Source: Podarcis bocagei
Lineage: Eukaryota
DNA: 64,000 bases
Assembly: GCA_964188305.1 (NCBI GenBank)
Contig: OZ076888.1
Direction: 5' to 3' (one strand)
The translations under genes were made by a program, and so were the position numbers. How positions within the stretch are numbered: position 1 is the stretch's first letter; each line of letters begins with the position of its first letter. The notes under the pieces were generated by a model. It saw nothing but the letters and a program-made list of their open reading frames with translations. It did no database searches and was not told the origin of the DNA. Positions 20,601 to 57,176 of the stretch are shown here, piece after piece.

Positions 20601-23600
20601 ATTCCTTGAAATAGTTTTATGGTGCTGCAAGGCTCTGATATTGACCCTCTGGAAGTTGGCGATTACAGGAGAAACGTTTTCTTAACACTTATTTTATGGC
20701 ATAACCTTAAAGGTCTGCAATCCTTCAGATGCATGAAGTGTTATCCCGAATTGCAAGTATATGTACACATGGTTGGTGAGGATTAAAATCAGAGGAAAAT
20801 GAAATGCAAAAAGTATGAACAGTAATAAATATTAGCTTCTCATTCTCCAAACAGTAGCTGATGATAGCATAAGTATCCTAGCACTGATACAAATATACCA
20901 TGGTTCAAACCACAGATTACAGTTTGTCAATATTTTATATGTTAAGCAGACACAGTTCTGTGCTTAATCAATTCTTATCAATATTTCCCCCCTGAGGCCA
21001 ATTGCTCCTTGCAATATCTTTTATAGTTAAATTAACTGTTCTACTTATTAAATCCTGCCAACCTAGCAGTTCGAAAGCACGTCAAAGTGCAAGTAGATAA
21101 ATAGGTACCACTCCAGCGGGAAGGTAAACGGCGTTTCCGTGCGCTGCTCTGGTTCACCAGAAGCGGCTTAGTCATGCTGTCCACATAACCCGGAAGCTGT
21201 ACGCTGGCTCCCTCGGCCAATAAAGCGAGATGAGCGCTGCAACCCCAGAGTCGGTAACAACTGGACCTAATAGTCGGGGTCCCTTTACCCTTTACCTTTA
21301 CTTATTAATATCTCTCTGTACCTGCCGTGACTGAACAATCAACTTTTACTGTGGCCTTACCTTGAATGCATGTGGGTGTTCTTCACCTTATTTATATTTA
21401 TTTATATGTATTTTATAGCCTACTCCACCCTGTAATCCCAGGTTGAATTACATACAAGTAACATGCCTTGCCATAAATTTAAGCATATCAAAGCAAGCAA
21501 CATCAGTAACAACACTGCAGTGGAATTCATATTCTTTACTAATCCTGTACCCCCAAAGACCTATGCAAAGAAGTGTGTCTTGACCCACCGACAATGTAGT
21601 TACAATAATACGGCCAGATGCATCTTAGAGGAAAAGCATTGCACAAGCTGGGGGCCACATCAAAGAAGGCCCTCCCACCCTCTGTCAGGGCCCAAACCAC
21701 CTGTAGGATCTACACTGCAGACCTTAACATCCAGGCGAGTCAGTACGTACTAGAGGTGCTCTTCAGATATTTCAGCTCCAAGTATTAGGTACTTAAGCAT
21801 AGGGTCCTAACCACCAAGTTAAAAGTTCTGGAAGCTGTCAGAGGCTCAGCCTTGTGTATGACTGAAAAAATATTATATGCTACTATAAGATGCCTAGATG
21901 TTGCTTCAATAAAAGCGATCACATAATTCCATTAGTCTGTCTTTCTATTGAGCCCAGCTCCCCTTTGTTTTGCTATGGCACTAGATCAAAGTCCTTGAGG
22001 ATTTTATTCCATTCACAAAAGTCTTCTCATTCATGTCATTGTCACTCATCCTCCCCCCCCCCCCCGCCCCAACCCCTTCATGAGCAAAACATTGCCCTTG
22101 CTAATTTGGTTTTTCTTCAACCTTGGTCACAAAAACGAAATAATCTTTTCTTCCTTCTCCTGGACACCCACTTTCTAATTGGACGCAAATAATAGAGAGG
22201 GGGTAAAGCAGTAACACTGAAGGTTATTGCACTGGTGATTGTAATACTGTGGTGTAATACTATGGTGATAAAAGCAGAGAATCCAAGCTGCAAAGCAAAC
22301 AAGATTGCTCCCCCTGCCCACACCAGTAGCTGCTCTTTTCTAATATTATGCAAACTGGGGGAGTGGGCTGTACACATCCTCCTCCTGCTTTAACATGGCT
22401 GCAGTACAGGGCTTTTTCTATTGTGCAGGACTGGGCTGCGAGAAGGGTTCTGATTGTATGTACTGTCTCGCATTTCCATTTCATTAGCGTTAATAATAGG
22501 CAGGCATATTTTTGTGCGGGGGAGTGTTGCTGATAAAGTGACCTTTCAAAATTACGAAGCCCAGTAAAATGTAGCACGGAATAAGGGGGTTTAGAGCTGT
22601 TTCCAACTGTGAGGTCTCTAATCATAAAATTGGGTTGGATTTCAGTTGTCCGGGCAAGACAATAAATGGACTGCAAGCCCATTTCTTTGTTACAGTATGC
22701 CCCAAATGCATGGGGGATTAAAGAATTAAAACAAGGGGAAAGCTATACTCAAAAGATCCTTCAGGCTGGTTTCAGATGAGAAAAAGGCAACAAGAAGAGA
22801 TGGAATGTAACCTCTAATTATTTATGGTATTGTTTTCTTTTGATTGTTAGGTTTTTGAGAGTACCTAAAATAAAATTTAAAAATAAATTGGGTGGGGGAG
22901 ACAACAAATGATGGAGGCAGGCTGCCCCACGATCTTATGCAATGTAGTTACACACGGGAATGAATTCAGTTACAGATAGGTAGCCGTGTTGGTCTGCCAT
23001 AGTCAAAAAAAAAAAAAAAAGGTGCTACTGGAAGGATTTTTTTTTATTTTGACTGGGGAATGCAAAACATGAAAAGGGGAGATTTTTAAAATATTTCTTT
23101 TTATTAATTATTTTGTTATTTTACTTGTAGCCAGCCTTTCACCAGCCCTTCTAACCAGGGCAGGTTAGAAAAATATCACAACTAAAAGAGTACAATTGAA
23201 TTAAAACCTCAAAAAATATAACCACAAAATTCATCAGTAATGCAATTGACAAAACAACAGCCCAGGATAGTAATTGAAGAGGAGGGAGGATATCCACTCA
23301 ACCAAAGGTCTGCATAAAGAAAAGTAGAAATGTGGTAAGTCTAGATGGAGATGATGCACGAAAGGTTTCTAGTAACTGGGAATGGTGAAGTCAATGGAAG
23401 AAGTAAAAAAATTTGGGGTTAAGTGCTAAGGTTGCAAGCTTTTGGAAGTCTCCAGCAGTGAGTGACATCAGATCCACCAGGTAGGATAGGTAGGGCACAG
23501 TCATGAAGGTACTAAGGCAAAGACAAGAATTTTATGCAGAAGATGTGGAAGAAAAGTCAGTAGAGATGAGAGTTTATATATTGTGTGAATATGCGCGCGC

Positions 23601-26600: not shown

Positions 26601-29600
26601 GTTTTGGCAGCCATAATGGTGCCACCCATGCTAGAAGGTAGTATATGCATCTTTATTTTTTTTAAAGCAGGTTAAAAAAAAAAGTCCCGAAACAGAAAGG
26701 GAAAAACTGCATGGGTGTGTGCTCCTATGGAGGGTGGGAAGAGGAGGTGGAAAGCAGCAGAGAGTGAGGAGGGTGTGCTGTGCAAAGATGCCTGCCCACA
26801 ACATGAGATCCACTTTTACAGCTGCAATAGTAACGGACTGTGCCTCTTGTTTCATCTGGAATAGGAGAGCTGGGGAGAGACCTTAGCTTGGTGACAGAGC
26901 ATGCGCTTTGCATTTGGAAGGTTCCACATATAATCCCTGGCATCTACAGTTAAAACTAATGAGAAAAATGTTTGCCTGAGATCCTAGACAGCTGCTGCCA
27001 GCCAGACAAATAGTCTTCTCTGATCTAGATGAGCAAATAGTCTGAGCAGTGTAATCTATGCCTTATATCTTACCTAGAAAAGCAATCACTAGTTCAGCTG
27101 CCAGCTGGTGTACCCTTTTCCTCCCATTGTGCTGCCTACACTTTTGGGTGTGCCAGGTTTGGATGAATGTTGTGCTCCCACCCATACTTGTAAAACATTT
27201 ATGTTTAATTCTTTGGTCAGCTGGTCATTCTGTGCTACTAGCAGGCAAGAGGATTCCTATAGCTAAACTCTCCGGCTTCAGCTGGCTCTTAGTCTCGGTT
27301 CCCTTTGAAGATACCCTTATTTGTATCTCCTCTTCAAAGTCTTAACTGGACCTATGTAGCTGCTAAGAGCAATGTTCCCATGGTGTTGCTTAGAGATGCT
27401 GAACAAGGAAACAGTCACTTAAGTTGGGAGAAAGAGCTTCTATTGATCTGGTAGACAACCAGCCTTGGACTCTCAACCTGCATTTCTACTTGTTTCTTTT
27501 CTGGCAAATTTATTTTGCTGGAAGACAATCAGAGTGGCTGGGGCAACCCAGTCAGATGGGTGGCATATTATTACTATTGGTAATTACTTTTCATCTTCAT
27601 CATCTAGGGACATATTCCTTCCAAACTGAATTAAAATATGCAGCCCTTATTTCCACTGCAATATATCTTACAAAGGTTTCCATCTTGCCCTGGCAACAAG
27701 GTAATTAACGTCACATTTAAAGGATGAAATGTGAGATTGCTTGAACAATCCTTTACCTGCCTAAATATGACTACAAATATCAGCTCAAATATCTAAGATG
27801 TAGTTTTTCTACAGATGTTCTATGCCCTAGGAATATTGGGGTGGGAGGGAGTAGGCTTAATGAAAGAACGAAGAACTTTTGGGTTGGGGGGATGGAAACA
27901 TGCAGGGTGATGTATAATGCTGAAGAGAAGAGGGATGAATTTGGAGGAGATTACTGGAAGGTGAATGATAAAGATTTGGGTGGAAGAAGGATTTTAGATA
28001 TGAGCAATAATTTTGCATGGTGTGTAACTGGATGGCGCACATGCCATGTGGCCCTTGAAGGGGTGTTCAGCCCTCAATGCCAAATAAAGTTAGCCACCCT
28101 GTTCTGGGGTATTTCCCTGTAGTGGGGAGGGGATCCTTGGATAGCTTGTCCCTCCCACTTGCTCCACTGGGCAGAATTATTCAAATGAGATAGCTCTTAC
28201 CTTCCAGTGGGAGGGTGACTCCTCCAGTTCCTTCCTGTCTAGCTCCTTGCACAGGAAGAATGTCATGGGACTGGCAAATTGATTCCCTTTGTGGCCATGT
28301 ATCAAAATTCATTTTTACTTTAATGTCAATCACATATTGGAAGTTACCATGTTTTTCTATTCCCCTTTAAAGCTGCTAAATGTATATGGCAGTGTTCTGC
28401 TAATGCTTCCTCCCACCCCTCCTCTGCCATGTACTCCCCACACTCTCCCCAGAACTGCTCCAGAGAAGTGAGGGAACACATTGAACAGAATTTGGGGCAT
28501 GTGAGGAGAGAAGAGAAACATCAGCCTACAGGTATCTAAATGGAGTTCCATGTGCTGAGGCTGTGTACCTATGAATTCCAGATGATGGAGACAAATAGGG
28601 AAGACCATCCTTGCTATGAAATGTTCAATTAGGCCTGCTGGAAACAGAATGCTTGTCAAGATGGACTTTGGGTTTGCTCCAGGAAGTTAGTTTTTATATA
28701 TTGCCTATCCTTCTGTGGAATCTGTTCCTTTGGGTCATTTTGAAACAGATCCAAGTTTAGAAAACCCAAGTATCTGTTTTACAGCATACTTTCCTTTCCA
28801 GCAAGAGTTTTTTGTTTGCTTTTTTTAAAACCTGAGGAGATGAGGAGTTGCATTTGCAAGAGAAAGGGTCAAAGTGAACACACAGTGAACCGGGGCTTTT
28901 TAATTCTGCCTTTTCATTATAGTATGGAAATGCTTGCACATTTCTGGGTCTCACAGCAGTTGATGATGTTGGCTACTCATTATCTCCTTCTTTTCATCTC
29001 TAGAGAAAGGGGTGGTTTTTGGAGCTCCACTGACTGAAGAAGGTATTGCTCAAATATCTCAACTGATAGAATATCTGCATAAGAGTAAGTGGTTTGTGGT
29101 TTCCTTTCTATCTTTGTTTAGTCAAGGATAGTGGACTGGTCTGGGGGCACAGATTTAACTCACTGCTGAGCTGAGGATGTCCTAAGAGCTATGTGATTCT
29201 AGGCACTAACCTTTTCCTGCCGCCCGCCCCCCCATATCAAATGTTTAGTGATTTTTTTTGTACTAGACCTCTGTAGGATGTTCAGATAATGTGGCAGGAA
29301 GAAAAGGAAAGTATAAAAGGTTAAGAAGCTTTGTCAATATATTAGAAGAGGACAACATTTTATCTAACATATTCTTAATACCCCTTTTGTCTTTCTTCTC
29401 ATGGTGCAGATCTGCGGGTGGAAGGCTTGTTCCGAGTGCCAGGAAACAGTACCAGGCAGCAGAACCTGAAAGAAGCCTTAAACAGTGGGACAGAAATTGA
29501 CTTGGATTCAGGGGAGTTTCACTCCAATGATGTGGCCACTCTGCTGAAGATGTTCTTGGGAGAATTACCAGAGCCTTTGTTGACCCATAAACATTTCCAT

Positions 29601-32600
29601 GCACACCTCAAAATTTCAGGTGAGTCAGCCTTGAAGGGAAGTGGGAACCAGCCCACAGGATGTTAGCATCAATAATTTGGGGTTTGCCTTGTTCAGTGAT
29701 AAAGCTGTTGGGTTAGGATCAGAGAAAGGCCTGCTTTCTCTGCCCATGTCATAATAGGAATATATAAGCATGAAACCTTCGGGATTTCTGATTTATGCTG
29801 AGGAAAAGAAGAGTTGCAAAGGAGTGTGATGGCAAGTTGGGAATGGGCAGTTGATAAAATAGTGTATAGTTTCCTGAAATGTGTGTGCAACTGAAGTTTC
29901 TTGAGATGTTTTCCTGTTAATAGATCTGATGCAGTTTGATGACAAGGGCAACAAGACCAACATACCCGATAAGCAGCGTCAGATTGAAGCACTGCAGCTC
30001 CTCTTCTTGATCCTGCCAGCCCCCAATCGCAACCTGCTCAAATTGCTGTTGGATCTGCTTTATCAGACAGCCAAAAAGCAGGACAGAAACAAGATGTCAG
30101 CTCATAACTTGGCTCTTATGTTTTCACCTCACATTTTGTGGCCTCGAAATGTAAGTGGTGTTAGATTTTTAGGCAGCAGTACAAAAAACCAGGCTGGGAA
30201 GGAGTTATTCTGAAAATAAACCTACCTCTACCAGGGAGCCTACCTCTACCAGGGAGTGTATCTTACCTACACTCTCCTAAGGATTCTGCTTTGGTGTTTC
30301 CCACTATTGCCAGGTGACTGCCAGTGATCTACAGGAAAACATTCCCAAGCTAAATAACGGGATGGCTTTTATGATCAAGCACTCGCAGAAGCTCTTCAAG
30401 GTAGGTGTTTCAAAAGGAAGGGACAATCTCTATCTCTCTTTCAGTATCTGCTTAGCAAATGTCTCAGGCTGTCCTCTCCTGGAGGAAAATATGTTATGTG
30501 CACAGTCCTGACACTGTCAAGCCTGACAACTTTTTATCTATTACTTCCTTGGAGGTGCTGTGTACTGTGCCTGCTCCCTTTGCTGGGTAGATCACAAGTG
30601 GCACTGATATGTGAAAACAAGGCCTCCTATTCTAAATGGCAAGATATCCTGCACATGTGAGTGTCCTTGTAGTTACCGTGCCAAGCTCTGCCTTAACCAG
30701 ACAGTGCCCCTTTCCTGATCAGTTACTATCATGGCCTCTGAGGCTGCTCTTTGGGTCCTCATCTGTCCCTCTTTGCCATTTAGCTTAATAAATATCCCTA
30801 TTAATGGCTAAAATCTCTAGAAAACTAGGCAGGTTCACATTTAATTGTCAAAAAGTGAGACTCCTAAAGCATCTGGTAGCATACAACATATCTGAGATGA
30901 TAAAGGACTGAATGTTTGCCCTGGGTGACCCTCCTACCTATAAAGGAAGCACGCTTCAGAAGATTTTGCATAGATTACATTCAAAGTTGAAGTTGCTGGT
31001 CTGGTGGGGTGAGTGCCTGGAGCAACTGCTATAGGATGGAACCTCAGAGTTAGGGAGACTTCAGCTTAATTGTGTCTGACTCCTTCTGTTTCACTCTCCT
31101 TCCAAGGCTCCCTCATATATCCGGGAATGTGCAAGGCTGCATTACTTGGACTCCAGAACACATGCCTCAAAGGTAAGAGCAGTCCATGACATTGGTTATG
31201 AAAGGGAGCACCCAACATGGGCACCAGCAGGTCAGCAAACTGATGACTAAAACAGAGAGAGAATTTCCAGTAAGGGATTCTTCGGGGGAAATCTATTCCT
31301 TAGGAAGGCAGAAAAGATGTAATTAGACCTCAGTTTTGCCACTTGGACTGCTACATATCCCCTCTACTAAAATGTGTTCTAGTTAAGCTAAAATTCTAGA
31401 GAACGGAACAAATTCTCATTTAACTGCCAAAAACAGGACAACATTTAGTATCGCACATGCATATTTTGGGGAGAGAGGAAAAGATCGGGCCCTCAGCTGT
31501 TCACCCAGGTCTGACTTTGCTACTGGATACGAAGCTCGGACTACCTTTATTAGTGTGATGAAAGGCAAGATAGCTATCATTGGGAGTGGGTTGCTATTGG
31601 ACAAAGCAGCCTGAAGTGCAGAGTGTTTTTTTGAATTTTTGCAGGATGACTTGGACTTGCCTGTGCCCCGGAATTTCAAAGACTTCCAGCTTCTGAAATT
31701 CAAGAAGCGAGGACTGGTGGATCCCTCTGCCCACCAAGAAGACACACAGCAACATACAGAAGAAGCGCTGAAAGAGCTCTTCCACCATGTTCATAATATG
31801 CCAGACTCTGCCAAGAAAAAGAAGCTCATTCAACAGGTAGAAGGGAGACTTGGGTAACTGACTGGAGCAAAGAGGCATAAATGGGGCTTGGTGCTTGGAA
31901 TGGGAACCAGGATCAATCTTTGGGATAGATGGGCAATGCTGCAGAGTTAATCATGCTATAAAGTGTGTGTTCTAGTTTCAGAAGCACCCTGAAGCTCTCA
32001 CTCCTCAGGCAGGTGTACCCACACCCCGGACCCAAAAGCGGGCTCGCACTCGTTCCTTCAGTGGCTTAATCAAGGTATGGCTCTTTATACCATTAACAAT
32101 AACTTCGGCTGCAGTGGCGCTGCTCAAGTTACTTCTCGCTGGTGTACATATCGGGCATATTGTCTGCTGTCCAGATGCATAAGCTTTCTGATGGTATGGG
32201 GTGTACATATTCAGGCTTCTATAAATAAGCCCTATTCTGTTCTGTTGCCTTTTTCTTTCCGTTCCCCAGTCACAATCCCAGTGTTTTCCTTTTCTTCATA
32301 CAGCGTAAGGTGCTGGGGAGTCAAGGGTCTTTGGATAAAAAAGGGAAGGATGCAGTTTTGGAATCAGCGGGCATGAAAGAGCAGAAGCACGGCAGCAAGG
32401 AGAACGTTAGCATGGTAAGGCCAGCTGGAAGAACAATCACTGTGCACTCATAATGGGGTTGGTTCATGAAGGGGGTTGCTGCTAGCTATTGCCTGCAGTT
32501 CATATCTGTCTGCACTGATGTGGCGCCCTAAATTATCCTGAGCACAACAGGAAGTCTGGGAATAAGCCTAAAGCTCTAGATCAGTGTTTCCCAACCACTG

Positions 32601-35297
32601 TTCCGCGGCACACTAGTGTGCCGCGAGATGTTGCCTGGTGTGCCGCGAGATGTTGCCTGGAGGGAGGCGGGCGAGTCAGGCGGCGAGAGGCGGGGCGGCG
32701 GCGGCGAGGAGAGGCCGCCCAGCGCGGGGCTCTCGCCGTCTGCCTGCCTGGCTGCCTGCAAGCTCGGCGGGCAGCGCCTCCGCCCGCACCGCCCGCCTCG
32801 CGGCTCTCATTCCCTGCCCCTGCCAAAGCTCACCCAGCCAAGCCGCGCTCTCCTTCCTGCCTCGCTTTGCTGCCTCCCCCCCCCAAAGCTTGGAGGTTCC
32901 CCGGCAAGGGGGAGGGAAAAAAATTGAAACTTACACTTTCGTGCGTCCCTCCCGGCGTGACGCTGCGCGCTGACGTCATGGGGCTGTAATGGTGGTGTGC
33001 CTCGAGATTTTTTTCATCAAACAAGTGTGCCTTTGCCCAAAAAAGGTTGGGAAACACTGCTCTAGATGCATCACTCACATGACTAACGGAGCAGCCCTAA
33101 GCTGTGTTGGTGCTGGGGCCTGGAATATGCCACTGCTATGCGAGTGGAATGGCTACTAAATGCAGTACCTGCTCAGCCCTGGACATGAGTGGGGAATGGA
33201 GGGAAGACACACCAGCCAACTTCCTTGGAAACACTGCTATTGTCCACCAGTTTCAGAATGTGGTAGAAATGATACCTCCCATGCTGCCCAGAAACAAAGG
33301 GAGCCAAACCACACTGGCTGGCTTGTGAGTGGAGCCATGCTAGCTACCACTATGCTTCCTCAATACACAGCATCCCAACATGTGAGCCTCAGTAGCACGG
33401 CTCCCAAGAGGCCCCAGGCAGCCTTGTAGGAAAGGATCCAGCACCTCAAATACCCCATCCCACATAGTTGCACACCAGCCTCAGATCCCTGGCAGCCCAT
33501 AGAACCAACCCCCAACCACCCTGTGCCTGATGGCCTCTGCCTTCTGGGTAGCATCCCATCCCTCACTGACTGCCTCATATCCCCTGGCAGCAACACTCAG
33601 CCCCCTGGTGCATTCTCAGTGACCCATCTGTGGAGCCAGAGGAAACAGGAAGTGGGGGAGTCCAAGTCACATCCAACCTCCCTACCCACCCTCCTTCCAA
33701 GAGTTGCATCCTAAAGCCACTTGAACCTGATTCAACACTTATGGAACATTGATGTTTTTTTATTGAATGGCACCTGATAGAGTGAATCTGAAAAAATAAA
33801 GAGGCATGTACATGGTTACTGACCAATCATCCCAGCAGAGGTTTTGTGCTGAGTGGCCAACCCTACAGAGGAGCAACTGGAAGGGAAATTTTCTGTGCCA
33901 TGTTTGGTATAAAGATGTACTGTTGATGTTGACATGGATGTGTATTGAAGGGGTACGGGATCCAGCATAAGTGCTGCTTGTCTCTGTTGCCCATAGCTGT
34001 GACGCTTTCCAGATACGTATGTCACTGGCTGAGCGTTCTGCCAGCATATCTGTTGTGGCAGTGACACATGTGGCATTCTTCCAGTGCCGCAGGGTTTCCA
34101 CTGAATCTTGTAACCCCTGATCCAGTGTAGGAGTAAGCCCTAAGCCCATCTGCCCTGCTGCTCTTAGAACTCTTTCTTTCCCAGTGTAACAAAAGGCTGT
34201 TTCTTTCCTTTCCAAATCTGGGGAATTGAACTTGATGCCTCTGCTCCTATTGGCTGATGGCCATTTTTGCATTTGGATGCTCCTTCCTTCTGAATTAAGG
34301 CTCCATTTTTTTTCCCGGAGCAGCTTAATTTCCAGAAGTTTGGCAGACAAGTGTGTGACATGGCAGGCTAGTAAATCTATGCAGCATGAGTAAGATCATG
34401 TTAGAAGTTGACTTGAATTTAGGCAGGCCAGTTGCTGGCAACTGAACCATCCTATCTTAGAGAGTGACAGCAAGGTTCAGAGGTTAGAGTTTTCTCATCT
34501 TCCCTAGTTACAGAAACCTGCTTCCTCTCCAGCCATCAATGTGATTTGAGCAAGTCTTAGGTCCCCTGAGGACAGGAAAGGGGAGTTCAATTCCGTATGT
34601 ATACATTACCATGTATAAGCAGCAGCAGCTTGCAATCTCATGTTCTCCTTTTTGGTATGAAGCCTATGGACTTACAGAACTGCCTTTTGGAATAATAGAA
34701 TCATAGAATTGTAGAGTGGGAAGGAATCCCAAGGGTCATCTGGTCCAGCTCCATGCAATGCAGGCATCCTGCCCGCAGCCACCCCTGGGTGGGCCTGAAC
34801 CATCAACCTCTGGTTAACATCCAGACACATTGACCTATTGCAGCACAGAGGCTGCAAAGATTCTTTTGAAGTGTGTGATGTGTGTCTATAGCTTGATGCC
34901 TAAACTCATTGCCAAGAATTGACCAAGAAGCTGCTGTCAGGATAGTTAACTTTTATCTGACAGATAAAACTAGTGAATAGATTTAAAGTGTTAATGTTAG
35001 TCCTCAAACTGCCTTGAGTAGGCTATTTCTGTTGGCAGCATCCGTGAATGAAAGGAAGATGTGCAGAGAAGCAACCAAGCTAGAAGAGTGGGTTAAAATG
35101 GTCCTTAGCCTTAAATCTGCTCTTCTCAACAGGAAGTAGAGGTGTAATGTGGTGAAATGTTTCCGTGGCTTCCTATCCTTTCCTAATGCTTGCAAGCACA
35201 GCTCAGTACAAATGTACTAATTATTCTCCTTCTGGTACAGGACTCCCGGAAATATACTCGATTCCATGGTTCCTCGACAAAGGAGTCTTCCATTTGA
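17472..35297 (+). CDS. ARHGAP19: Rho GTPase-activating protein 19, 12 coding exons; in-frame TGA in exon 11 gives 474 aa, versus 508 aa if it were a sense codon
   Basis: Translation matches recalled human ARHGAP19 (DAICSLVICNDSS, FNPDFFVEKLRHEKPE, arginine finger EGLFRVPG, QFDDKGNKTNIPDK, KRARTRSFSGLIKRKVLG); phases consistent; synteny with RRP12 and SLIT1. Confidence 0.95.
17993..18287 (+). mobile_element. CR1 LINE 3' end fragment
   Basis: GGATTAGACAAATTCATGGAGGAGAG...GCTGGACTAGAT...TCTTATGTTCTTATG, typical squamate CR1 3' end. Confidence 0.7.
18405..18645 (-). mobile_element. MIR-like (Squam3-type) tRNA-derived SINE
   Basis: TTTA tail, TTTATCCTCACAA core, reverse B-box GAATTGAACCC; reverse complement of the copy at 18720. 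Confidence 0.7.
18720..18941 (+). mobile_element. MIR-like (Squam3-type) tRNA-derived SINE
   Basis: A-box-like TGTGGTGTACTGG, core GTTGTGAGGATAAA, A-rich tail. Confidence 0.7.
19036..19413 (-). mobile_element. Old L1/Tx1-clade ORF2 C-terminal remnant
   Basis: Reverse translation with frameshift and stop: LLHKELTTFLLVVAQLLIA / HITQWKQNMWTLASSEKLT...FVAIWHPIIKY; poly(T) and TTTATT at the left end. Confidence 0.55.
19414..20165 (+). mobile_element. L2-clade LINE, 5'-truncated, fairly young (open ORF2 C-terminus 19443-19976)
   Basis: L2 motifs VTSRLDYCNLLYVGLP, LQRVQNAAARLL, LHWLPVEYRIRFKVL; CpG retained; 3' UTR ending ATAAATAAA. Confidence 0.88.
21052..21298 (+). mobile_element. Sauria SINE, 5'-truncated, 10-bp TSD
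   Basis: CCTAGCAGTTCGAAAGCACGTCAAAGTGCAAGTAGATAAATAGGTACC body, CCCTTTACCCTTTACCTT tail; TSD TACTTATTAA at 21042-21051 and 21299-21308. Confidence 0.9.
22963..23055. mobile_element. Short Penelope-like-element terminal remnant with inverted structure
   Basis: GGTAGCCGTGTTGGTCTGCCATAGTCAAAA and GGTGCTACTGGAAGGA resemble recalled squamate PLE termini in opposite orientations; flanked by GGGAATG direct repeats. Confidence 0.5.
25293..25629. mobile_element. Degenerate hAT-type MITE
   Basis: Subterminal GGCCC motifs (GGCCCCGGGGACCAAATGTGGCCCTC) and right end GGGCTGAAATAGTTTCCCTACCCCAG. Confidence 0.5.
25718..25974 (+). CDS. ARHGAP19: ARHGAP19 exon 2
   Basis: tag|DAICSLVICNDSSLQRHQIIFNPDFFVEKLRHEKPE...FFRSLMSLKRK|gtgagc. 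Confidence 0.95.
26162..26370. mobile_element. Tc1/mariner-pogo-type MITE remnant
   Basis: TA|CAGGCAAT...ATTGCCTG|TA: inverted termini with TA flanks. Confidence 0.6.
26410..26549. mobile_element. Palindromic ~140-bp MITE (abundant squamate family; related copies near 10777, 35954, 36653, 36988, 37875, 41283/43714, 55735)
   Basis: GGGGTGGGAAACCTGTGGCCCT...GGCCACAGGTTCGCCACCC inverted arms. Confidence 0.7.
26872..27055 (+). mobile_element. tRNA-Ala-derived SINE, degenerate
   Basis: TAGCTTGGTGACAGAGCATGCGCTTTGCAT...ATCCCTGGCATCT resembles tRNA-Ala(TGC); tail GCTGCTGCCAG...CTAGATG...GTCTGA. Confidence 0.55.
29004..29084 (+). CDS. ARHGAP19: ARHGAP19 exon 3
   Basis: tag|EKGVVFGAPLTEEGIAQISQLIEYLHK|gtaagt. 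Confidence 0.95.
29410..29619 (+). CDS. ARHGAP19: ARHGAP19 exon 4 (RhoGAP arginine finger)
   Basis: cag|NLRVEGLFRVPGNSTRQQ...HAHLKIS|gtgagt. Confidence 0.96.
29924..30150 (+). CDS. ARHGAP19: ARHGAP19 exon 5
   Basis: tag|DLMQFDDKGNK...NKMSAHNLALMFSPHILWPRN|gtaagt. Confidence 0.96.
30314..30400 (+). CDS. ARHGAP19: ARHGAP19 exon 6
   Basis: cag|VTASDLQENIPKLNNGMAFMIKHSQKLFK|gtaggt. Confidence 0.95.
31107..31172 (+). CDS. ARHGAP19: ARHGAP19 exon 7
   Basis: aag|APSYIRECARLHYLDSRTHASK|gtaaga. Confidence 0.94.
31645..31836 (+). CDS. ARHGAP19: ARHGAP19 exon 8
   Basis: cag|DDLDLPVP...HTEEALKELFHHVHNMPDSAKKKKLIQQ|gtagaa. Confidence 0.94.
31976..32074 (+). CDS. ARHGAP19: ARHGAP19 exon 9
   Basis: tag|FQKHPEALTPQAGVPTPRTQKRARTRSFSGLIK|gtatgg. 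Confidence 0.93.
32304..32414 (+). CDS. ARHGAP19: ARHGAP19 exon 10
   Basis: cag|RKVLGSQGSLDKKGKDAVLESAGMKEQKHGSKENVSM|gtaagg. Confidence 0.9.
32582..33059. mobile_element. Young non-autonomous hAT transposon (478 bp) in ARHGAP19 intron 10
   Basis: Perfect 15-bp TIRs CAGTGTTTCCCAACC/GGTTGGGAAACACTG; perfect 8-bp TSD CTCTAGAT at 32574-32581 and 33060-33067; CpG-rich interior. Confidence 0.93.
34508..34594 (+). CDS. ARHGAP19: ARHGAP19 exon 11 (87 nt, phase 0-0) with in-frame TGA at 34547-34549
   Basis: TTTTCTCATCTTCCCTAG|LQKPASSPAINVI*ASLRSPEDRKGEFNS|GTATGT; loosely aligns with recalled human LLFSGSPAVTMTPTRLKWSEGKKE. Confidence 0.72.
34693..34852 (-). mobile_element. tRNA-Asn-derived SINE with CR1-like 3' tail
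   Basis: Reverse strand GCCTCTGTGCTGCAATAGGTCAATGTGTCTGGATGTTAACCAGAGGTTGATGGTTCAGGCCCACCCAGGGG resembles tRNA-Asn(GTT); tail ...CTCTACAATTCTATGATTCTA. Confidence 0.75.
35241..35297 (+). CDS. ARHGAP19: ARHGAP19 putative terminal exon 12 coding part (DSRKYTRFHGSSTKESSI*)
   Basis: TTCTCCTTCTGGTACAG acceptor, open in phase 0, CpG-retaining, ends in a class I PDZ-like motif, followed by 3'UTR-like sequence. Confidence 0.62.
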   Translation, partial: DSRKYTRFHGSSTKESSI

Positions 35298-37531
35298 AGA
35301 TCCACTCAATGGTCGGTCTCTCTCTTTATATCAATATATATCTACACACAGCAAAGACTTGCAGCTCTGTGGATAATGCCTGCTACTCCCTGCTACTGTG
35401 AGTCAGGACTCGCTTATCCCTCTAACCTCACTTATTGGAGCCTGGCCTACAACTGTGTGTCTGCCAGAATAACAGACTCTTCCACTGAACATGAGGAAAC
35501 CACTATTCAACCACTTGTCTAGCCTGAGAATGGACTGGACAGTATCTGCAGTATAGCCTCTCTTTGGAGAGGTTGCTTTGTATGCCTTGTTCTCTCAGCT
35601 GTCCATCTTTCTAACAGTTCTTTGGGACTTGGCTTACACTGTCCTGTTTTGTGGCTGGTGTTTGTTTGTTTGTTTTTTGATTTTGGCTTTTAGTGTGTAC
35701 GCACACTGTTTCTTTTACCCCTGCAATTCCCATTAGCATCCACAGTAGAGTCAAGCTTTCAGATCCCCTTGGCAGCTAGGCTCATCTCGGCCTCTCTTTG
35801 TATGGAAGTCTCTCTGTTGTGGTTACTGATGGGATTTGAGAAGTAGCTGTGCTCTTAGCTGCCTCTCCCAGATTGCAGGGATCTCCCTCAGGCCTGTGGC
35901 TCATCTGTCACAAATCCCAGCGTCTGATGTATCCGAACTTAGACATCTTAAACCAGGGATGCGGGGAGCCTGTGGCACTCTAGATGTTGTTGGAGTCTCC
36001 AGTTAGCCCAGCCACTATGCCCTATTCTTGGGGATGATTGGGAGTTGTAGTCCAGCAATATCCCTCATTTAAGAGCAGCGGTAGCAGGAAATAATTTCTG
36101 AAAACTGCCCCTTTAAAAAAATAGAGCCCAAGGGCTCCTTGGCTGAATTCTAGCATGTCTGGTGAATCACCTGCAATGTGATTACATCTTTCTCCCCTCA
36201 AAAGGCCGCCAGTTCTGTTGCCACAGACACTTGCCTTCTGCCTGCTACGATTATTCTTCCATCAGCGCTGATTGCCAAGACAGCGTTTTGGCTGAGGCTC
36301 TGCCTGATGGAGTCTGTTTCACTGCCCCCTACCTGTCACATTCCCATTATCTGTGGCCCAGGCTCTGATGTACGTTGCTCAGGCAGGACAGGGGGCTGAC
36401 AGTTTAATGACTAACAATCTGCTGAAAATGCACTGAAAGAGAGGAACTTGCAAATACAGAAGGCTAACTGACTTGCTCCCTGGAAAGGAGGAGAGGCTGT
36501 CAAGATGAATAAAAGAAATGTTCCTGTTTCCTTCCATCAACAAGAAGAGGGCAGGTGGGAGGGTGGTGCAATGCTATAGCAATACTGCTATTTACAGCTC
36601 TGTATTTGCTAAGCTTTCCCCTGTACCTAAAGTAACAAGTGTCTGTCTGGGTCAGGGGTGGTGAACCTGTGGCCCTCCAAGTTGTGTTGGACAAAACACC
36701 TATTAAAACTCCCACCTATTACCTGTACACTGTCACCAGCCCCAGCTAATGTGGCTGAGTTGAACAACATCTGGAGGGCCACTTACTATTCCTGATAACT
36801 GGCTTCTGCCTTAGTCTCAGAGAGATTTGGCTCAAAGGCTTTTGCAAAGGCACTGTATATTTGAATTTCCTAAATATGCGAGGATTGAGCTTCCTTTTAT
36901 TATTCTAAAAAGAATGTCGTAAATCTGTGTCAGGGACCCTGTCAAATGGTCTTCTGATGTGTGGAGATGTATACACCCCTGTTAAAGCAGGTATGGGGAA
37001 CCTGTGGCCTTCCAGGTGTTCAACTCGACCTCTTGTCACCCACAACAAGTAGCCATATGGTCTGGAGCTGATAAAGAGTTTGGGGTCCGACCACACCTGG
37101 AGACTAACAGGTTAGCTGCTTCTATGTTCCTCATCTCCCCAACCCCCAAGCTGGCATGTAGCTTCAGCCAAAGAAGTAGAAAGCTGCTAACACTTGGGAG
37201 GTCATAGGCAAGACTGAAAAATGCCCCAAAAAATGTCAGGGGAAGCAATCATAGTGGGCAAAACCAGTTTCGACTACTCTAGATCTTAAGCTTGGGTCAT
37301 TCAAATCTTAGCGGTATTGTAAGTGAAAGCAGGACTGCCCCCCATTGTTGTGTCAGTGTTGCTTGTGCAGGTTCTCTGACTGCCCCCATTGTTTTTCATG
37401 TTTTACTGTTCTGTTCTCTTAACTTATCCTTATGTGGACAACCTTTACTTATTTATGCAATGTAGTAATGTAAGTAAAATAATATGTTGTTTCTTGTGGT
37501 GTATTGCCCTCTGTTAATGTGAAAATCCCAC

Positions 37532-41331: not shown

Positions 41332-43693
41332 TTTTTTTTTTTTTTGTAAAATTTTTTATTGCGTTTCTTTCCATAGGTTAACAAGTTAATTTACATAGCA
41401 ACATACAAGAAACATTTTTTTTATATATATATGAAGAAAAGTAGAAAAAAGAAGACAAAAGTTAAATATCATCAAATTCACTTTCTTTTGGACCTCCTCG
41501 CATCCTCTCAGCATTGCTTTCATTATTCTAACCAGTTCAGCAATTTATTATCTTGTTTCACATCTTATTGTACCTTTGAGTTTATTATGTTACCAATTTC
41601 AGAAATTTGTAGTTTGTTTTCAAGACTTTTAATAAACATAATATTTTGTTTCTAATTTATCTCGTTTTTTTCGTCATTACTTACTTTATCATTTACTTAG
41701 ATAATTTGCAGAAGCGTGACGTTTCTTAATCGTGCAAATCTTAACATTCAAACAACTTATAGTATTTTTGCAAATAGTCCTTAAATTTTTTCCAGTCTTC
41801 CTCCATTGTTTCTTCGCTCAGATCTCGGATTCTGCCAGTCATTTCTGCCAACTCCATGTAGTCCATCAGCTGCGTCTGCCAATCCTCCAGTATGGGTAAA
41901 TCTGGTGTCTTCCAGAACTTTGCAATAAGGATCCTTGCTGCTGTGGTTGCATACATAAACAAAGTTCTATCCTTCTTTGGCACCTTCCGGTCCACCATGC
42001 CCAGAAGAAAGGCCTCTGGTTTCTTAGAAAAGGTATATCTGAATACCTTTTTCAGCTCATTATGTATCATTTCCCAAAAGGCCTTTACTTTCGGGCAGGT
42101 CCACCAGAGGTGAAAGAATGTCCCTTCTGCCTCCTTACATTTCCAACACTTATTATCAGAAAGATGATATATTTTAGCCAACTTGACTGGGGTCATGTAC
42201 CACCGGTATACCATTTTCATAATGTTCTCTTTCAAGGCACTACATGCCGTGAATTTCATACCGGTGTTCCATAACCTTTCCCAGTCCTCAGACATAATGT
42301 TGTGTCCTACATCCTGTGCCCATTTTATCATAGCAGATTTAACTGTCTCATCCTGTGTGTTCCATTTAAGCAGCAAGTCATACATCCTCGAAAGTACCTT
42401 AGTCTTTGGTTCTAGTAACTCCGTCTCCAGTTTCGATTTCTCCAACTGAAAACCCACTTTTTTATCCATTTTAAATACCTCTTGAATTTGAGCATAATGT
42501 AACCAATCTCGCACCTTATTTTTTAGTTTGTCCTGGCTTTGGAGCTTCCAATTATCTCCAACTCTTTCAATCAATTCCCAATATTTTGGCCAGTAGGCCT
42601 CCATATTGGGCCTTTTTTTAGAAATCTTGGCTTCCACTGGTGATAACCACCTCGGGGTCTTGCTTTCTAATAAGTCCTTGTACTTCATCCAGACGGCAAA
42701 GATTGATTTTCTGACAATACGGTTTCTAAACAGTTTGTGAACCTTCGCCTTGTCATACCACAAGTATGCATGCCAACCATACACATTATCAAACCCTTCC
42801 AGATCTAGGACATCGGTGTTTTCCAACAAAAACCAATCCTTCAACCAGCAGAAGGCTGCAGCTTCGTAGTACAACCTTAAATCCGGCAGGGCAAACCCCC
42901 CTCTTTCTTTTGAGTCAGTTAGTATTTTAAATTTTATTCGGGGCTTTTTGCCCTGCCAGACAAACTTAGAGATATCCTTCTGCCATTTTCCAAAACATTC
43001 CATTCTGTCCACGACCTGAAGGGTTTGAAATAAGAATAACATTTTTGGCAGAACACACATCTTTATAGCTGCGATTCGGCCTGACAAGGTAAGTTTCAAT
43101 CTTGACCAAATATCCAAGTCTTTTTTAATTTCCAACCAACATTTTTCATAATTATCTTTAAAAAGGTTTAAATTTTTAGTGGACAAGGATACCCCCAGGT
43201 ATTTCACTTTTTTAACCACACTTAGCTCTGTCTCTTTCTGGTACCCTTCTATCTCTGTAGGTGTCAGATTTTTGACCAAAACCTTAGTTTTTTGTTTGTT
43301 TAGCTTAAATCCCGCCACCCGACCAAACTCCAAGATAAGTTCCAGAACTCTTTTTGTGCTAGATTCTGGCTCCTGTACTGTCAAGACTAAGTCATCTGCG
43401 AAAGCTTTCAGTTTGTATTGTTTCGCTCCGACCACTATACCCTGCACCAACTGGTCCTCCCTGATCATATTCAGCAATACCTCCAGAACAGAAATAAATA
43501 GCAGAGGGGATAGAGGGCACCCCTGTCGTGTCCCTTTTTCAATTTGGAGTTCCTCCGATACCACATTGTTCACTATCAGCTTAGCTTTTTGCTCTGAATA
43601 AATTGCTTCTAGTCCATTTTCAAACCCCCGTCCCACTCCCATCCCTTTCAAGTTTTTCTTCATGAACATCCAAGAAATGTTGTCAAATGCTTT
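41332..43693 (-). mobile_element. L1-clade LINE, 5'-truncated, young; open partial ORF2 (41741-43693), 3' UTR, poly(A), 20-bp TSD
   Basis: RT motifs KAFDNISW, QGCPLSPLLF, FADD, KYLG; C-terminal CCHC knuckle CWKC...HLWWTC; T-run 41330-41345; TSD CTACAGCTCCCATGATTCTT at 41312-41331 and 43694-43713. Confidence 0.95.
41741..43669 (-). CDS. LINE ORF2 fragment (reverse transcriptase C-half plus CCHC domain), N-terminally truncated
   Basis: 642-aa ORF in the track; the frame continues to the truncation point at 43693; no endonuclease domain, so not autonomous. Confidence 0.85.
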   Translation of the reverse strand: MFMKKNLKGMGVGRGFENGLEAIYSEQKAKLIVNNVVSEELQIEKGTRQGCPLSPLLFISVLEVLLNMIREDQLVQGIVVGAKQYKLKAFADDLVLTVQEPESSTKRVLELILEFGRVAGFKLNKQKTKVLVKNLTPTEIEGYQKETELSVVKKVKYLGVSLSTKNLNLFKDNYEKCWLEIKKDLDIWSRLKLTLSGRIAAIKMCVLPKMLFLFQTLQVVDRMECFGKWQKDISKFVWQGKKPRIKFKILTDSKERGGFALPDLRLYYEAAAFCWLKDWFLLENTDVLDLEGFDNVYGWHAYLWYDKAKVHKLFRNRIVRKSIFAVWMKYKDLLESKTPRWLSPVEAKISKKRPNMEAYWPKYWELIERVGDNWKLQSQDKLKNKVRDWLHYAQIQEVFKMDKKVGFQLEKSKLETELLEPKTKVLSRMYDLLLKWNTQDETVKSAMIKWAQDVGHNIMSEDWERLWNTGMKFTACSALKENIMKMVYRWYMTPVKLAKIYHLSDNKCWKCKEAEGTFFHLWWTCPKVKAFWEMIHNELKKVFRYTFSKKPEAFLLGMVDRKVPKKDRTLFMYATTAARILIAKFWKTPDLPILEDWQTQLMDYMELAEMTGRIRDLSEETMEEDWKKFKDYLQKYYKLFEC

Positions 43694-51534: not shown

Positions 51535-52130
51535 GAGAAGGGGTAGATGGAGGCAGTGGTTTGTCCCATCCTTAAGGAGACCTCCCTGGACCCAGAAGTG
51601 TTAACAGTTATTGCCGTGGAGAATAGAGAGTTGACAGTCTACTTTCAGGCCTGCTTGGAGGAAACTGATTACTCGGAGACATTCAAGTCTGGCTTTAGGT
51701 CTGCTTGTGGCACTTAAGCTGCCTTAATCACCCTGGTTTATTACATTTGTCAGGAGAGAGATGTGTGGGCAGTATGACCCTGCTCATTCTCCTCAATCTC
51801 CCAGTGGCTTTTGATACTGTTAACCATGGTTTCCTTCTGTAGCATCTCAGGGAGGAGGTGGGGCTTGAAGGCACTGTGCTTCACTGGTTGCACTCCTACC
51901 TCTAGAATGGTTTCCAGAAAGTAGATATGGGGGGCTACAGTCTGGCATGATGGGAGGTGTCCTGTAGTGTCTGTCCCACTGGATTTCATCTTGCCCCGAT
52001 GCTATTTAACATTTATATGAGGCTTCTGGGAGCTGTCATTAGGAGATTTTTGGTGAAGTGCCATCAATAAGCAGATGGCACCCAGATTCTAGTCCATTTG
52101 AATCTGGAGAGGAGGTTGAGATGTTAGAAT
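51535..52130 (+). mobile_element. Degenerate L2-clade reverse transcriptase fragment (shorter related piece at ~50400-50480)
   Basis: Broken RT-like reading (EAVVCPILKETSLDP, SGFR, AFDTVNH-like). Confidence 0.6.
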
Positions 52131-52839
52131 GGTGCTTGGAAACTCTTACTGGGGGGACACCAGCATGCCCAGGTGGGTGTGTTACCTGTCTGTAATAGAC
52201 ATCAACAGTCAATATAGGAGTAGACGAGAGATAATCAGTGGTGGTCTGATATTGGGCTTGGGCAATCATCTGCATGTGAATATCCAAATGGTAGTGTCAT
52301 ATATAGGTAGGGTAAGGTAAGGTATGATAAGGACATATGTGGACCCCATTCTCTCATCATCAGTTTGACCACCTTCAAGTTAAATTCCAAACCCCAGCAG
52401 CTATGGATAGTCTAGTTTCCTGTAGATTAAACACCCCCACACCCACACCCCCTACTACACCTGAGAAGCTGATGCGATTCCAGGTATCTTAAGGTTACAT
52501 CCCTTTGTTTTTCAGCCCCATTGATACTGAAAGCTCAGGGTGTTCGCAGATTCCCTTGTGTTCCCCAAAGGGCATGGCACCATAGCTTGCCAATTCACTT
52601 TAGAAGAGTCTTCCTTTGAAACTTACATCACCCTGGCAATTGAACTAAAAAACATGCATTTATTCAAGGGGAGTTGGGTGGACTCATTGATCGGGTGAGA
52701 TGGTGGAAAAAGCCAATATGGTTTGTTTTGTGTTCTTGTATAGATCGGATTGTGACCTCAAAGAGTTTACATCAAAACACAACCTATCGACAGAAATCAT
52801 ACACAAAAAACCCTGTTTATCACAAAGGACACCACAGTC

Positions 52840-54400
52840 CCATTGTGTGTGTGTGTCCGAGTACGAAGGGCGACTCTTCTTCTCTGGGCCTGTGTGTCTG
52901 TCCTGCTACTTTCGGACGCTCTTCGCCTATTTTTCCTCTATGTGCATCTTTACTGCGTCTCTCCACGACAGACTCTCAGAGCGTGTGCTTCGCTGCGTGT
53001 GTGTGTATACACACGTACGTGTGTGTACACGCGCGTGTATAGCTCTCTCTTCCACGGAGGTGTCTTGCCTCTTGGCTGGTGATTCCGCGAGTGCGTTATG
53101 TGGGAGCCTCCTCTCTGCTCCCTGGGCAGACAGTGCGCGCCTTTCTCCCGGCCCTCTGTCGGAGAAGAGGGTGGGTGGGTGGCGGTGGCGGGGAGAGATC
53201 TGTGCGCCCGAGGCGGGTGAGGAGACTGAAGGGGGGACGGGGGCGGAGCCAAGGCTGCTCCTGCTGTCTGGGCTTGATGGATGAGACGGGGGCTCCCGAT
53301 GTGTGTCTTTGAGAGCGAGGCAGCGAGACGCGAAGGCAGCGCGTGTTCCTGTGCTTAACCCTCCCGGGCGGCCGGAGCTGCTTCTTCCTGCGACCCGGAC
53401 AGGCGACGAAGTGGAAGCAGCAGCAGCCGGGGTCGCCCGCCTTCGCCAGAAGGCAGCCTCTCCACGCCGCCTCGGCGAGCGCGCCGTGCGATCATGTGCG
53501 GGGCAGCCCCTCGCTAGCCAGCGCAGGCAGCATGGCTCCCGCGAAGCGAGCGGCGTCGGGCGGCGTGTGGCTGCGGGCGGGAGCCTGCCTCTTGGCCTGG
53601 GCGGCCTTTTGCCGGGTCCGGGCGAGCGCCTGTCCCGCGCCGTGCGCCTGCAGCGGCACCACCGTCGACTGTCACGGGCTGGGGCTCCGCAGCGTCCCCA
53701 AGAACATCCCGAGGAGCGCAGAAAGGCTGTAAGTGCTGGGGGGCGGGGCGGATCGCGGGCCTCGGAGGGGGAGACGTTTGCGACCCCGGGGGGTCCTGGG
53801 GGTGGCCCCTCTCTCGGGTAGGGGCTCCGCCGGTGCCGGCCGCCACACCCCCTCTCCCGCCCTCACAATGGAGCCCCGCCGCTTAGGATGTGCAGCTGCG
53901 AGACGCGCTCAGACGGTCCGAGATGGGGGGCAGACAATGATCCATCTGGGGGACGTCGGGAGGGAGTTGGGTCGGGCTGAGGCGGCCGCCGCAGATCCCT
54001 TCGGAGTCTCCGGGAACAATCACTCGATTGCCTTTGTTAGGGAACTGCGGCGCGCGCCCGTGCGGGTGTGCCCCCCTCCCAAACCATTGGGTGGGTGTGT
54101 AACGTCTTCCCAATCCACCCCGCCTCTCACACGTGCGCCAGAGTCCGGTGGCCTGCAGGTCCGGGTCAGGTTTAGAGCAGCGCGGGTCGGGGGGGGGGAT
54201 TCCTGCTGGGCGCGATCCGGCCGTTGCGCTGCGCCTCCTTGCAGCGCGTGAGATGCCCGGGACCAGGCTAACTTTAGCTGCACGAGCTGGCTGCTCGGCG
54301 AGGTTCCGGAAACGGGGAGCACGCACCGTGGACGCGTATGTGTGTGCTGGCGCGTTCACGCGGGTGTGAATCTCCTGTGGGCCGGCTGGCGGGGGCTGCT
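52840..54400 (+). promoter_or_regulatory. SLIT1 CpG island / promoter and first exon region
   Basis: Sharp rise in GC and CpG density around the SLIT1 ATG; GC box GGGGCGGAG near 53240. Confidence 0.85.
53532..53728 (+). CDS. SLIT1: Slit homolog 1, exon 1 (signal peptide plus LRRNT); later exons outside the window
   Basis: [66 protein letters not shown]; donor ct|GTAAGT (phase 2); position after ARHGAP19 matches SLIT1 synteny. Confidence 0.93.
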
Positions 54401-57176
54401 TATTTTCTCCACTTATCTGCATGCAGTGTGTGTATGTTTGTTCGTGTTCTGTCTGCTCTAGTAAGACTCTCTGGGGAAACTGCCTCCCTCTTCTGTGGAG
54501 CTAGATGGATGCCTTTTGGGGGCCCTTCCTTGGAAATGGGAGCTTACGAGTGAGAGGGTCAAGTCCTCTTTAGGAGCGTAGCCCCCTTTCCTACCCCTTG
54601 TGTAACTGGCCACACCACATAAGTGTATCTGACACGATAAGGCTGCACCCACACTATACATTTATTTTCCTCAAACAATCCTGGGAACTGCAAATTGCAT
54701 GCCCCGAGCTACAATTCCCAGCACCCTTAGCAAACTACAGCTCCCAGGATTCTTTGAGGGAAGAAATGGGCTTGAACTGTGGGTGCGACCTTTGAGACAG
54801 AGGAGCTCTGTGGAGCAGGAGGAGGTGTGTGTGGAGGATGGAATCTGGACCGTGGAGTCTTGAGTGTCCCTTGCTGCCTCTTCCAAACCCCTACAGGAGG
54901 GGGCTTGCTGTCTCTAGCCAAGGCTGCAGCCCTGGTGACTGTCCTTTCCCATCTCTCCCTTTGCTCCCTCTTTCGACAGTTTAATGAGGGGTGAAGAAAG
55001 AGGATCCATGGGGGGGGGGGGAAATCCTCTCCCCATGATCAACCCTTCCCACTCAGGCAATATCCATGGCAAAAGCAGAATACCAGGCAGATAAAGGGGA
55101 GATCAATTGGGGAGGGGTTTGAACATGGGGTGGAAGAGACAGACAAGGGAATGGCAGCCCAGGCACTGTGTGTGCCTTTCATCTCTGCATGTGAGGTTCT
55201 GAATTATCCAGAATAAAGGCAGGAGGGGAGGGGAGGGAATGGGAGCTCAACTGGAACAGGGGCTGATCATTAACGCACACACAGACCCCTCCTCATTACA
55301 CACTTACCGTACTTAATGCTGGCTGGAATGCTCCTCATTCCTTCGCAGCAGCAGCAGCCTGACGGTGTCCATTGCTTTGGTTGGGGGTGCAAAGGGAAGT
55401 AAAAAGCTGGAGGGGATGCTAAATAATTCACCAGAATGCAGCACTGGAACGTGCTGTTTAGGCTGGGGGGAAACAAGGGGGCTGAGTGGTTGGATTTATT
55501 GCAGTCAAGCAGGATATTCCCTCCTTGCACCTCTTAAGGCCTTGCGATTCTTTCCGTTTCTTTTCTGCTTTTACGCTTGAAACGGAACGGACAAAGTCTG
55601 TAGGAGAGAGTCAGGACCCTTGAGCCTGCCTTGCAGCTCCTGTGCAATTGCTGTCTGGGCTCCCCCAGAGCCTCTGCTCAAGCCCCTTAGTCTCTGTTCC
55701 TAGCCTCCCTCCAGCCTCCCCCAACCTGGCGCTCTCCAGATGGCTTGGACGACAACTCACGTCAGACCCGGACAAGTACAGCTTGTTGCGGTCCCAAACA
55801 TCTGGAGGGGGAGGAAGGCTGACCTACTGCTCTCCCCACCACCCAATTTGCTGTCTCTTGATCTCCTCTGAGGAATGTCTCCCTCTGTCGCCAGACAGGC
55901 TGGGACGGGGCTTCATGTGTAGGATACTCTTTCAGATTTATGCTTGACTGCAGGGTAACCTAGAAAAGAATGGGGGTGGCATGTGGTGTAAAATGTGAAT
56001 GTGGAAGATTCCTATGAGCATCAGGTGCAGCAGAAACTTGGTGGGCAGGGGGTGCTCCCCTAGCTACCCAGAGAGATGCTAAACCTGAAGTTAAGCAACT
56101 TTGCATAAAAGGCAATACCATGAATATTCTCGCAGCGGGTAATTATAGCAGTTTTATTTAGATGCAGCCCTTTTCCTGGTCTCTTGTGAGGGTAGCATCT
56201 TGTCTCTGGTCAGCATGGTTCAAGACAAGTCCACACCAAGGCACCAAAGCTTTCCTGCTTCTGGGTATCATCTTCTTTGCTCTCGTCTGAGCTCATTATT
56301 GGGCCAGGCATGGGGATATGATCCATCTACCCAGTTCTAAGTGTGGCAGTGCAGTGGGAGCACAACAGTCCTCCCTCCCCTTGAAGTCCTGCAGATTCTA
56401 AGAGTTTCAGAAGCCATATTCCAGGTGCTAAGGCAGGCCTGGTCCGTTGTGTGTCATGAGGATCTCCTACAAGGCAATCCACCCATTCCTATTATCATTT
56501 CTTCTACAAACCAATTAGTCCCCTCAGAGTGAGCCTAATTAGGTCAGGGCCCTGTAGATGCTTCTATGCACAACAAAGCAAGCTTGGTGAACTCAGTTAG
56601 TAGCACCGCGGGACACCTTCTTTAAAAGGGCACCTTCTTTAATGGCATTTCCTTCTCTGGCACCTTAATTACCTTCATTGAAGTTGTTATCATGGCACAG
56701 ACATGGGGAGCTGCTTTGTGAGTACAGAATGAGTGTGCTGCCCACAAGCACGAAACTTGGCTCAGATCTGAAATGCCAGAACACCAGGAAGGGCTACCAT
56801 TCCTGTTTTGACAAGAGGGACCTCAATTGCCACTCACAGTTGGAGCACTACTTCTCATGGTCATCCTACTTCAGAGGTGGGGAATCTTTTTTGGCCAAGG
56901 GGGCCAGATTCTTTATCTGTCTCAGTCTTCCATGGACTAACTTTGACAGGTGGGCAGGACAGCCCATTGAGAGGGTAAGACCTACCCACTCTGTATGGAC
57001 ATAAAGAGGAATACATCTTCCCTGTACCCCACACATAGACTGGCCCCAGAAGTTTTACCGACATCTCTCCTTGAGAAAGAAATGGGATGGGGAACGGTGT
57101 TAGGATTACAAAAGCACTGAAAACTTCCTTCCACCATCTGATGAGAAATCTGACCATTAGATATCTCTAACTTGGC

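Follow-up and report, generated by a model that had tools for sequence, protein, structure and literature searches.

An in-frame stop codon with open reading frame on both sides raises the question of whether the gene is truncated, the sequence wrong, the codon decoded or the exon no longer used. This question is posed by the 3' end of ARHGAP19 in a stretch of 64,000 nucleotides from Podarcis bocagei (contig OZ076888.1 of assembly GCA_964188305.1; hereafter, the window), where a TGA at positions 34547-34549 interrupts an apparent penultimate exon. The evidence assembled below favours, with a probability of roughly 0.8, the reading that this sequence is a dead exon relic in the last intron of Podarcis ARHGAP19, that the mRNA skips it and that the gene has undergone a lineage-specific exon loss.

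The interrupted frame and exon 11 of other squamates

The interrupted frame spans positions 34508-34594 (87 nt) and reads LQKPASSPAINVI, the TGA and then ASLRSPEDRKGEFNS, with an acceptor (...cttccctag) ending at 34507 on one side and gtatgt at 34595 on the other. The distance from the end of the TGA to 34594 is 45 nt, the junctions of exon 11 and of the last exon are both phase 0, the acceptor in front of the last exon (...ctggtacag) ends at 35240, and the window contains no N. Coordinates, length, phase and TGA distance had been given by an earlier sequence-only reading of this DNA and were all confirmed. A run of 33 open codons has a chance probability of (61/64)^33, or about 0.2, and is weak evidence alone; the stretch is considered more than a chance product because of homology, as the sequence on either side of the TGA has a genuine squamate exon as its orthologue, and the last exon has the same protein sequence as in the Podarcis RefSeq proteins. 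The features on which the argument depends are as follows (a slash marks an exon-intron boundary):

32304-32414, + strand: ARHGAP19 exon 10, RKVLGSQGSLDKKGKDAVLESAGMKEQKHGSKENVSM, ending ...SKENVSM; donor ATG/gtaagg; peptide identical to the P. muralis proteins
34488-34507, + strand: acceptor region of the proposed relic, ...ttttctcatcttccctag; intact, and followed after 6 nt by another AG (ttacag/); shared with Rhineura and 20/20 identical in three Podarcis
34508-34582, + strand: proposed relic of ancestral exon 11, 75 nt or 25 codons, LQKPASSPAINVI, stop, ASLRSPEDRKG; orthologous to Rhineura LQRPASSPTINVIRARLKSLEHGKE
34547-34549, + strand: TGA that replaced an Arg codon, CGA; shared by the window, P. 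muralis and P. raffonei
34580-34585, + strand: lost 5' splice site, GGGGAG, where outgroups have GAG/GTGAG, GAG/GTATG or GAG/GCAAG; a 2-nt gap, with no GT or GC left
34595-34600, + strand: cryptic donor gtatgt in ancestral intron sequence, weak (TCC/GTATGT)
35241-35297, + strand: last coding exon, DSRKYTRFHGSSTKESSI plus TGA stop, with an E-S-S-I carboxy end

In other squamates, the sequence corresponding to the interrupted frame is an ordinary exon. All the other squamate ARHGAP19 proteins read at this position (from geckos, skinks, a cordylid, an anguid, Varanus, iguanians, snakes and Rhineura) contain a 25-residue exon 11 with Arg at the TGA position, and in all lizards read, this exon is followed by the ESSI exon. 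Rhineura, for example, reads ...KENVNM at the end of exon 10, LQRPASSPTINVIRARLKSLEHGKE in exon 11 and DSCKHTVFHGTSTKESSI in the last exon, and Tiliqua reads FQRPASSPTFSVIRGRLKSSEPRKE followed by DSYKRTWFHGTSAQESSI; the same arrangement is found in Eublepharis, Gekko, Paroedura, Sphaerodactylus, Hemicordylus, Elgaria, Varanus, Sceloporus, Phrynosoma, Anolis and Pogona. In the comparison of exons 11 and 12 with orthologues, a check that the sequence-only reading had proposed, none of these other squamates has a stop at this codon. In the three outgroup loci inspected (Rhineura, Tiliqua and Eublepharis), the genomic codon is CGA (ATT CGA G), and a CGA>TGA change, as that reading had supposed, is right as an evolutionary event. 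Exon 11 of these outgroups measures 75 nt, has canonical splice sites, ends in ...AAA GAG and is followed by gtgagc in Rhineura, gtatgt in Tiliqua and gcaagt in Eublepharis. Outside squamates, a counterpart can be recognised in turtles, crocodilians, birds, amphibians and basal fishes. Ancestral exon 11 would be an ancient 75-nt cassette exon of phase 0-0, coding for ...SSP..INVIRARLKSLEHRKE in other squamates.

As a separate observation, the exon 11 donor of Eublepharis macularius (gcaagt, positions 23091-23096 of the fetched locus) is of the GC-AG type, its consensus being otherwise perfect.

Two disabling changes have struck this exon in Podarcis. One is the CGA>TGA change at codon 14. P. 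muralis (ATC TGA) and P. raffonei (ATT TGA), each assembled independently and to chromosome level, have the same TGA, and the in-frame stop codon is real. The other is the loss of the GT of the 5' splice site through a 2-nt loss and a substitution: the outgroup sequence GAG/GTGAG is opposed by GGGG--AG in all three Podarcis. The gtatgt that now follows the frame is found 14 nt beyond the true donor in Rhineura; in Podarcis its distance from the corresponding point is 12 nt, so that the cryptic donor is in frame by accident, because the 2-nt loss shifted 14 nt to 12 nt. On a crude donor matrix, an approximation that is not equivalent to MaxEnt, the cryptic site at 34595 scores -2.5 and the exon 11 donor of Rhineura +5.9; four of the five scorable donors of the window gene range from +4.4 to +6.9, and the exon 8 donor scores +0.6. 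The splice sites had both been described as good in the sequence-only reading, which holds for the intact acceptor but not for the donor, since nothing is left of the ancestral donor and the site put forward in its place is a weak cryptic one.

Downstream of the TGA, residues that are conserved in other squamates are changed in Podarcis (R/K to S, L/S/F to P and E to G). Among the three Podarcis, 3/87 sites vary in the relic (3.4%, on few sites), as compared with 50/1372 in the upstream and 25/626 in the downstream flanking intron (3.6-4.0%) and with 1/57 in the coding sequence of exon 12 and 6/401 in the first 400 nt of the 3' untranslated region (1.5-1.8%). These numbers are small, though in the expected direction, and are consistent with a relic that varies like intron and would now drift as such.

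Probable exon skipping in Podarcis

The gene is ARHGAP19 on the basis of its sequence and neighbourhood, as had been proposed from the letters alone. The Pfam RhoGAP domain (PF00620) is matched by the exons at 29379-29663 (E 4e-17) and 29905-30210 (E 2e-16), and a tblastn search with ARHGAP19 proteins from a representative search mapped 12 exons to the + strand, from about 17.3 kb to about 35.3 kb. For these comparisons, the window exons were searched singly, and the exon pieces were aligned as separate rows beside two database proteins. The exon peptides are identical or near-identical to Podarcis ARHGAP19 RefSeq proteins, the DNA identity of the locus is 97.4% to P. muralis and about 96% to P. 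raffonei, and RRP12 lies upstream of ARHGAP19, which matches the arrangement in P. muralis.

How these congeners are annotated bears directly on the fate of the interrupted frame. All five RefSeq isoforms (X1-X3 of P. muralis, XP_028586369.2, and X1-X2 of P. raffonei, XP_053245449.1) join exon 10 to the last exon, reading ...SKENVSMDSRKYTRFHGSSTKESSI across the junction and keeping the ESSI end; they share with the window the exon 10 and last-exon peptides as well as this 10-12 junction. An end in ...INVI, as inclusion of the relic would give, is found in none of the nine members (0/9) of the Podarcis ARHGAP19 cluster at 90% identity. The last-exon protein is identical to that of all Podarcis RefSeq isoforms, with one synonymous difference among the three species; the last exon of the sequence-only reading is real, and its S/T-x-hydrophobic end is conserved. 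The notion that the TGA is a native stop and the last exon a chance open reading frame was dropped, as orthologues show the ESSI exon to be real.

We infer the same splicing in P. bocagei from the RefSeq models of its two congeners. The mRNA would join exon 10 (...SKENVSM) straight to the last exon (DSRKYTRFHGSSTKESSI), and this junction is in frame because the ancestral exon measures 75 nt, a multiple of three, with phase 0-0. The predicted protein would lose 25 residues of a C-terminal tail region that is probably disordered, and would retain the RhoGAP domain and the ESSI end. That skipping would keep both the frame and the tail had been foreseen by the sequence-only reading, and all five isoforms are built in this way. 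Its expected main product, a tail-less protein of 474 aa, is in conflict with the annotated congener mRNAs, in which nothing is cut off.

The event is of a known kind, namely the lineage-specific loss of a cassette exon, which leaves a pseudoexon behind, and the exon-skipped model is already part of the public annotation of the sister species. The resemblance to this class lies in the symmetric phase 0-0 exon of the outgroups, the nonsense codon and destroyed 5' splice site in Podarcis, the flanking exons joined in frame in annotated mRNAs and the intron-like variation of the relic; the difference is that skipping in the window is inferred from the gene models of congeners. Likewise, ARHGAP19 of Rhineura floridana (XP_061490390.1) and Tiliqua scincoides (XP_066477574.1) shares the RhoGAP domain, the exon structure and the ESSI end with the Podarcis gene, but keeps the 25-residue exon 11 that is absent in Podarcis.

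Several points weigh against exon loss by skipping. The skipped models are Gnomon predictions made for two congeners. The acceptor of the relic is intact and invariant in three Podarcis, and the cryptic donor is in frame, so that some inclusion is possible. In addition, the relic differs from Rhineura at 12/75 nt (16%), which is not above the divergence between lizards in the same fast-evolving tail; the exon loss may, on this comparison, be recent rather than the outcome of long neutral decay. As regards lacertids other than Podarcis (Lacerta, Zootoca and others), two full-length protein searches gave no separate cluster, and none was among the cluster members listed, a list outside which 13 members of the Tiliqua cluster fall. 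A query with the C-terminal 118 residues of P. muralis found no lacertid transcript fragment in the protein collection, the fragments returned being one from a snake and distant ones from fish or without a name.

If exon loss is accepted, the correct gene model at this locus has exon 10 joined to the last exon, and it would be wrong to list the TGA as a truncating variant, an assembly error or a recoding site. The locus would then offer a small, clean case of exon death, with a nonsense codon and the loss of a donor both fixed in a genus.

Inclusion, allelic error and decoding as alternatives

The most serious alternative is that the relic is still spliced in to a meaningful extent through its intact acceptor and the cryptic donor at 34595, so that the protein would end in ...PASSPAINVI without ESSI and exon choice would toggle the tail. 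Several observations speak for such a scenario: the 20 conserved acceptor positions, the 87-nt in-frame exon that the cryptic donor provides after the 2-nt loss, and the alternative splicing of this region in other lizards, where isoform X5 of Anolis lacks exon 10 and isoforms X1 and X2 of Sceloporus differ by VSM. A premature stop that precedes the last exon-exon junction by less than about 50-55 nt usually escapes nonsense-mediated decay (NMD). The TGA, 45 nt before the possible last junction, fits this rule and would yield an NMD-insensitive mRNA; the likeness to an NMD-escaping premature stop is, however, restricted by the fact that the rule holds only where splicing uses the weak cryptic donor, and that the stop is intronic in the annotated mRNAs. 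Inclusion is further opposed by the very low score of that donor (-2.5), by the absence of the exon from the RefSeq isoforms of both congeners (0/5), by the intron-like variation of the relic and by the changed residues beyond the TGA (R/K to S, L/S/F to P), a pattern to be expected when selection is absent. On balance, meaningful inclusion is considered unlikely. A narrower version, in which the relic would be included in some tissues via the cryptic donor and give an NMD-immune mRNA whose product keeps GAP activity and loses E-S-S-I, is regarded as quite improbable. Were it true, Podarcis would have converted a constitutive exon into a poison-free "tail-off" cassette.

The two remaining explanations take the TGA either as an error or private nonsense allele, or as a codon that is read through. 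A CpG transition from CGA to TGA is common and gives the first of these some plausibility a priori, for which no further support was found; since the same TGA stands in two independent assemblies whose loci diverge from the window by 2.6% (P. muralis) and about 4% (P. raffonei), an assembly error or private allele, which the sequence-only reading had thought the simplest explanation, has a negligible chance of being correct. Decoding of the TGA, be it by selenocysteine or by programmed readthrough, would allow the full exon to be translated, and the 15 open codons that follow, together with a frame continuing into the last exon through the cryptic donor, agree with it. Fifteen open codons, however, arise by chance about half the time. 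Moreover, all orthologues carry Arg and not Sec or Cys, only Podarcis has the stop, the exon has lost its canonical donor, and the conserved residues downstream are changed. The context was read as TGA-G and is, as had been stated earlier, not the strong TGA-CTAG readthrough motif. Selenocysteine was rejected as a candidate, a search of 34000-37000 against Rfam having returned no match to a selenocysteine insertion sequence (SECIS) at E<=1. Decoding in either form is accordingly deemed highly implausible. The earlier proposal of a regulated switch by splicing or readthrough finds no support, with no annotated isoform including the exon, no SECIS and altered residues past the TGA, and exon loss by skipping is the reading retained here.

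The carboxy terminus of ARHGAP19 and further features of the window

The protein predicted from the window ends in ...KESSI-COOH, with S/T at position -2 and a hydrophobic residue at position 0, which corresponds to the class I PDZ ligand pattern. An ESSI, ETSI or ESSV end is carried by 53 of 253 ARHGAP19 cluster representatives and members of 430 aa or more. The carboxy ends read in the different groups are:

coelacanth: ...THESSI
sturgeon and gar: ...ESSV
amphibians: ...ETSI
turtles: ...KESSI
lizards: ...ESSI
birds: ...DSSSL
teleosts: E-[IV]-S-[LV], not class I
snakes: stop early in the last exon, ...RKEDASKNT or ...DACKHT
therian mammals: just past the exon 11 equivalent, ...KKEGRKGIL or ...KGFF

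As judged from the sequences, the ESSI-type end is ancient, being shared by coelacanth, sturgeon, amphibians, turtles and lizards. The -S-S-I-COOH terminus and the E-[ST]-S-[IV] pattern across these groups thereby resemble a class I PDZ-binding C-terminus, although it is a putative ligand known from sequence, and the ends of teleosts, therians and snakes depart from it. The E-S/T-S-I/V end is missing in all snakes examined and in therian mammals, and these absences look like independent losses of a putative PDZ-type tail. A literature search found no paper on ARHGAP19 as a PDZ ligand, and in the literature searched, the conserved E-S/T-S-I/V end of non-mammalian ARHGAP19, which therians and snakes lack, goes unmentioned.

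The exon lost in Podarcis corresponds to the TPTRLK stretch of mammals: the exon 11 equivalent of the mouse reads ...TVTPTRLKW, where squamates have VIRARLK without TP. In human ARHGAP19 (494 aa), Thr476 was reported as a CDK1 site (PMC12646654). Judged by its position in the 494-aa protein, Thr476 is probably the TP within the mammalian exon 11-equivalent stretch.

The C-terminal region of ARHGAP19 is a hotspot of alternative splicing in lizards. At 32400-32420, in the exon 10 region, there are two possible donors 9 nt apart (GAGAAC/gttagcatg/gtaagg). A 3-residue difference (VSM) between Sceloporus X2 (...KEN/LQRP) and X1 (...KENVSM/LQRP) would fit the use of both exon 10 donors. In Anolis, it is in A. 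carolinensis that X5 is without exon 10.

Further upstream in the gene is a 159-nt exon of phase 1-1 at 28373-28531 (+ strand), AAKCIWQCSANASSHPSSAMYSPHSPQNCSREVREHIEQNLGHVRREEKHQPT, situated between exon 2 and the EKGVVFG exon. Its 53 residues are present after exon 2 in all five Podarcis RefSeq isoforms and are absent from every other squamate ARHGAP19 protein examined. The Tiliqua and Eublepharis loci gave no DNA match to it, and in Rhineura only the downstream flank matches. Taken together, this extra exon may represent a Podarcis or lacertid exonisation, or else an annotation artefact. Compared with the Podarcis RefSeq proteins, the window reads SREVREH instead of SRELREH within it and has a different N-terminal exon 1 peptide.

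The last intron contains a tRNA-like stretch between the relic and the final exon:

34780-34852, - strand: tRNA-like stretch (Rfam tRNA, 29.5 bits, E 0.002)

ARAGORN called no tRNA gene at 34780-34852, and the stretch is probably the head of a tRNA-derived short interspersed nuclear element (SINE). The SINE-like insert spans 34700-34852. A repeat scan of 34000-36500 found nothing relevant.

Downstream of ARHGAP19, a 5'-truncated copy of a long interspersed nuclear element (LINE) occupies 41744-43669 on the - strand, with an open frame of 642 aa that matches the Pfam reverse-transcriptase domain RVT_1 (E 3e-18). Finally, positions 52000-56000 are rich in G+C (0.55-0.57), and long GC-rich open frames run on either strand; this block probably represents a CpG island belonging to the 5' end of the next gene.

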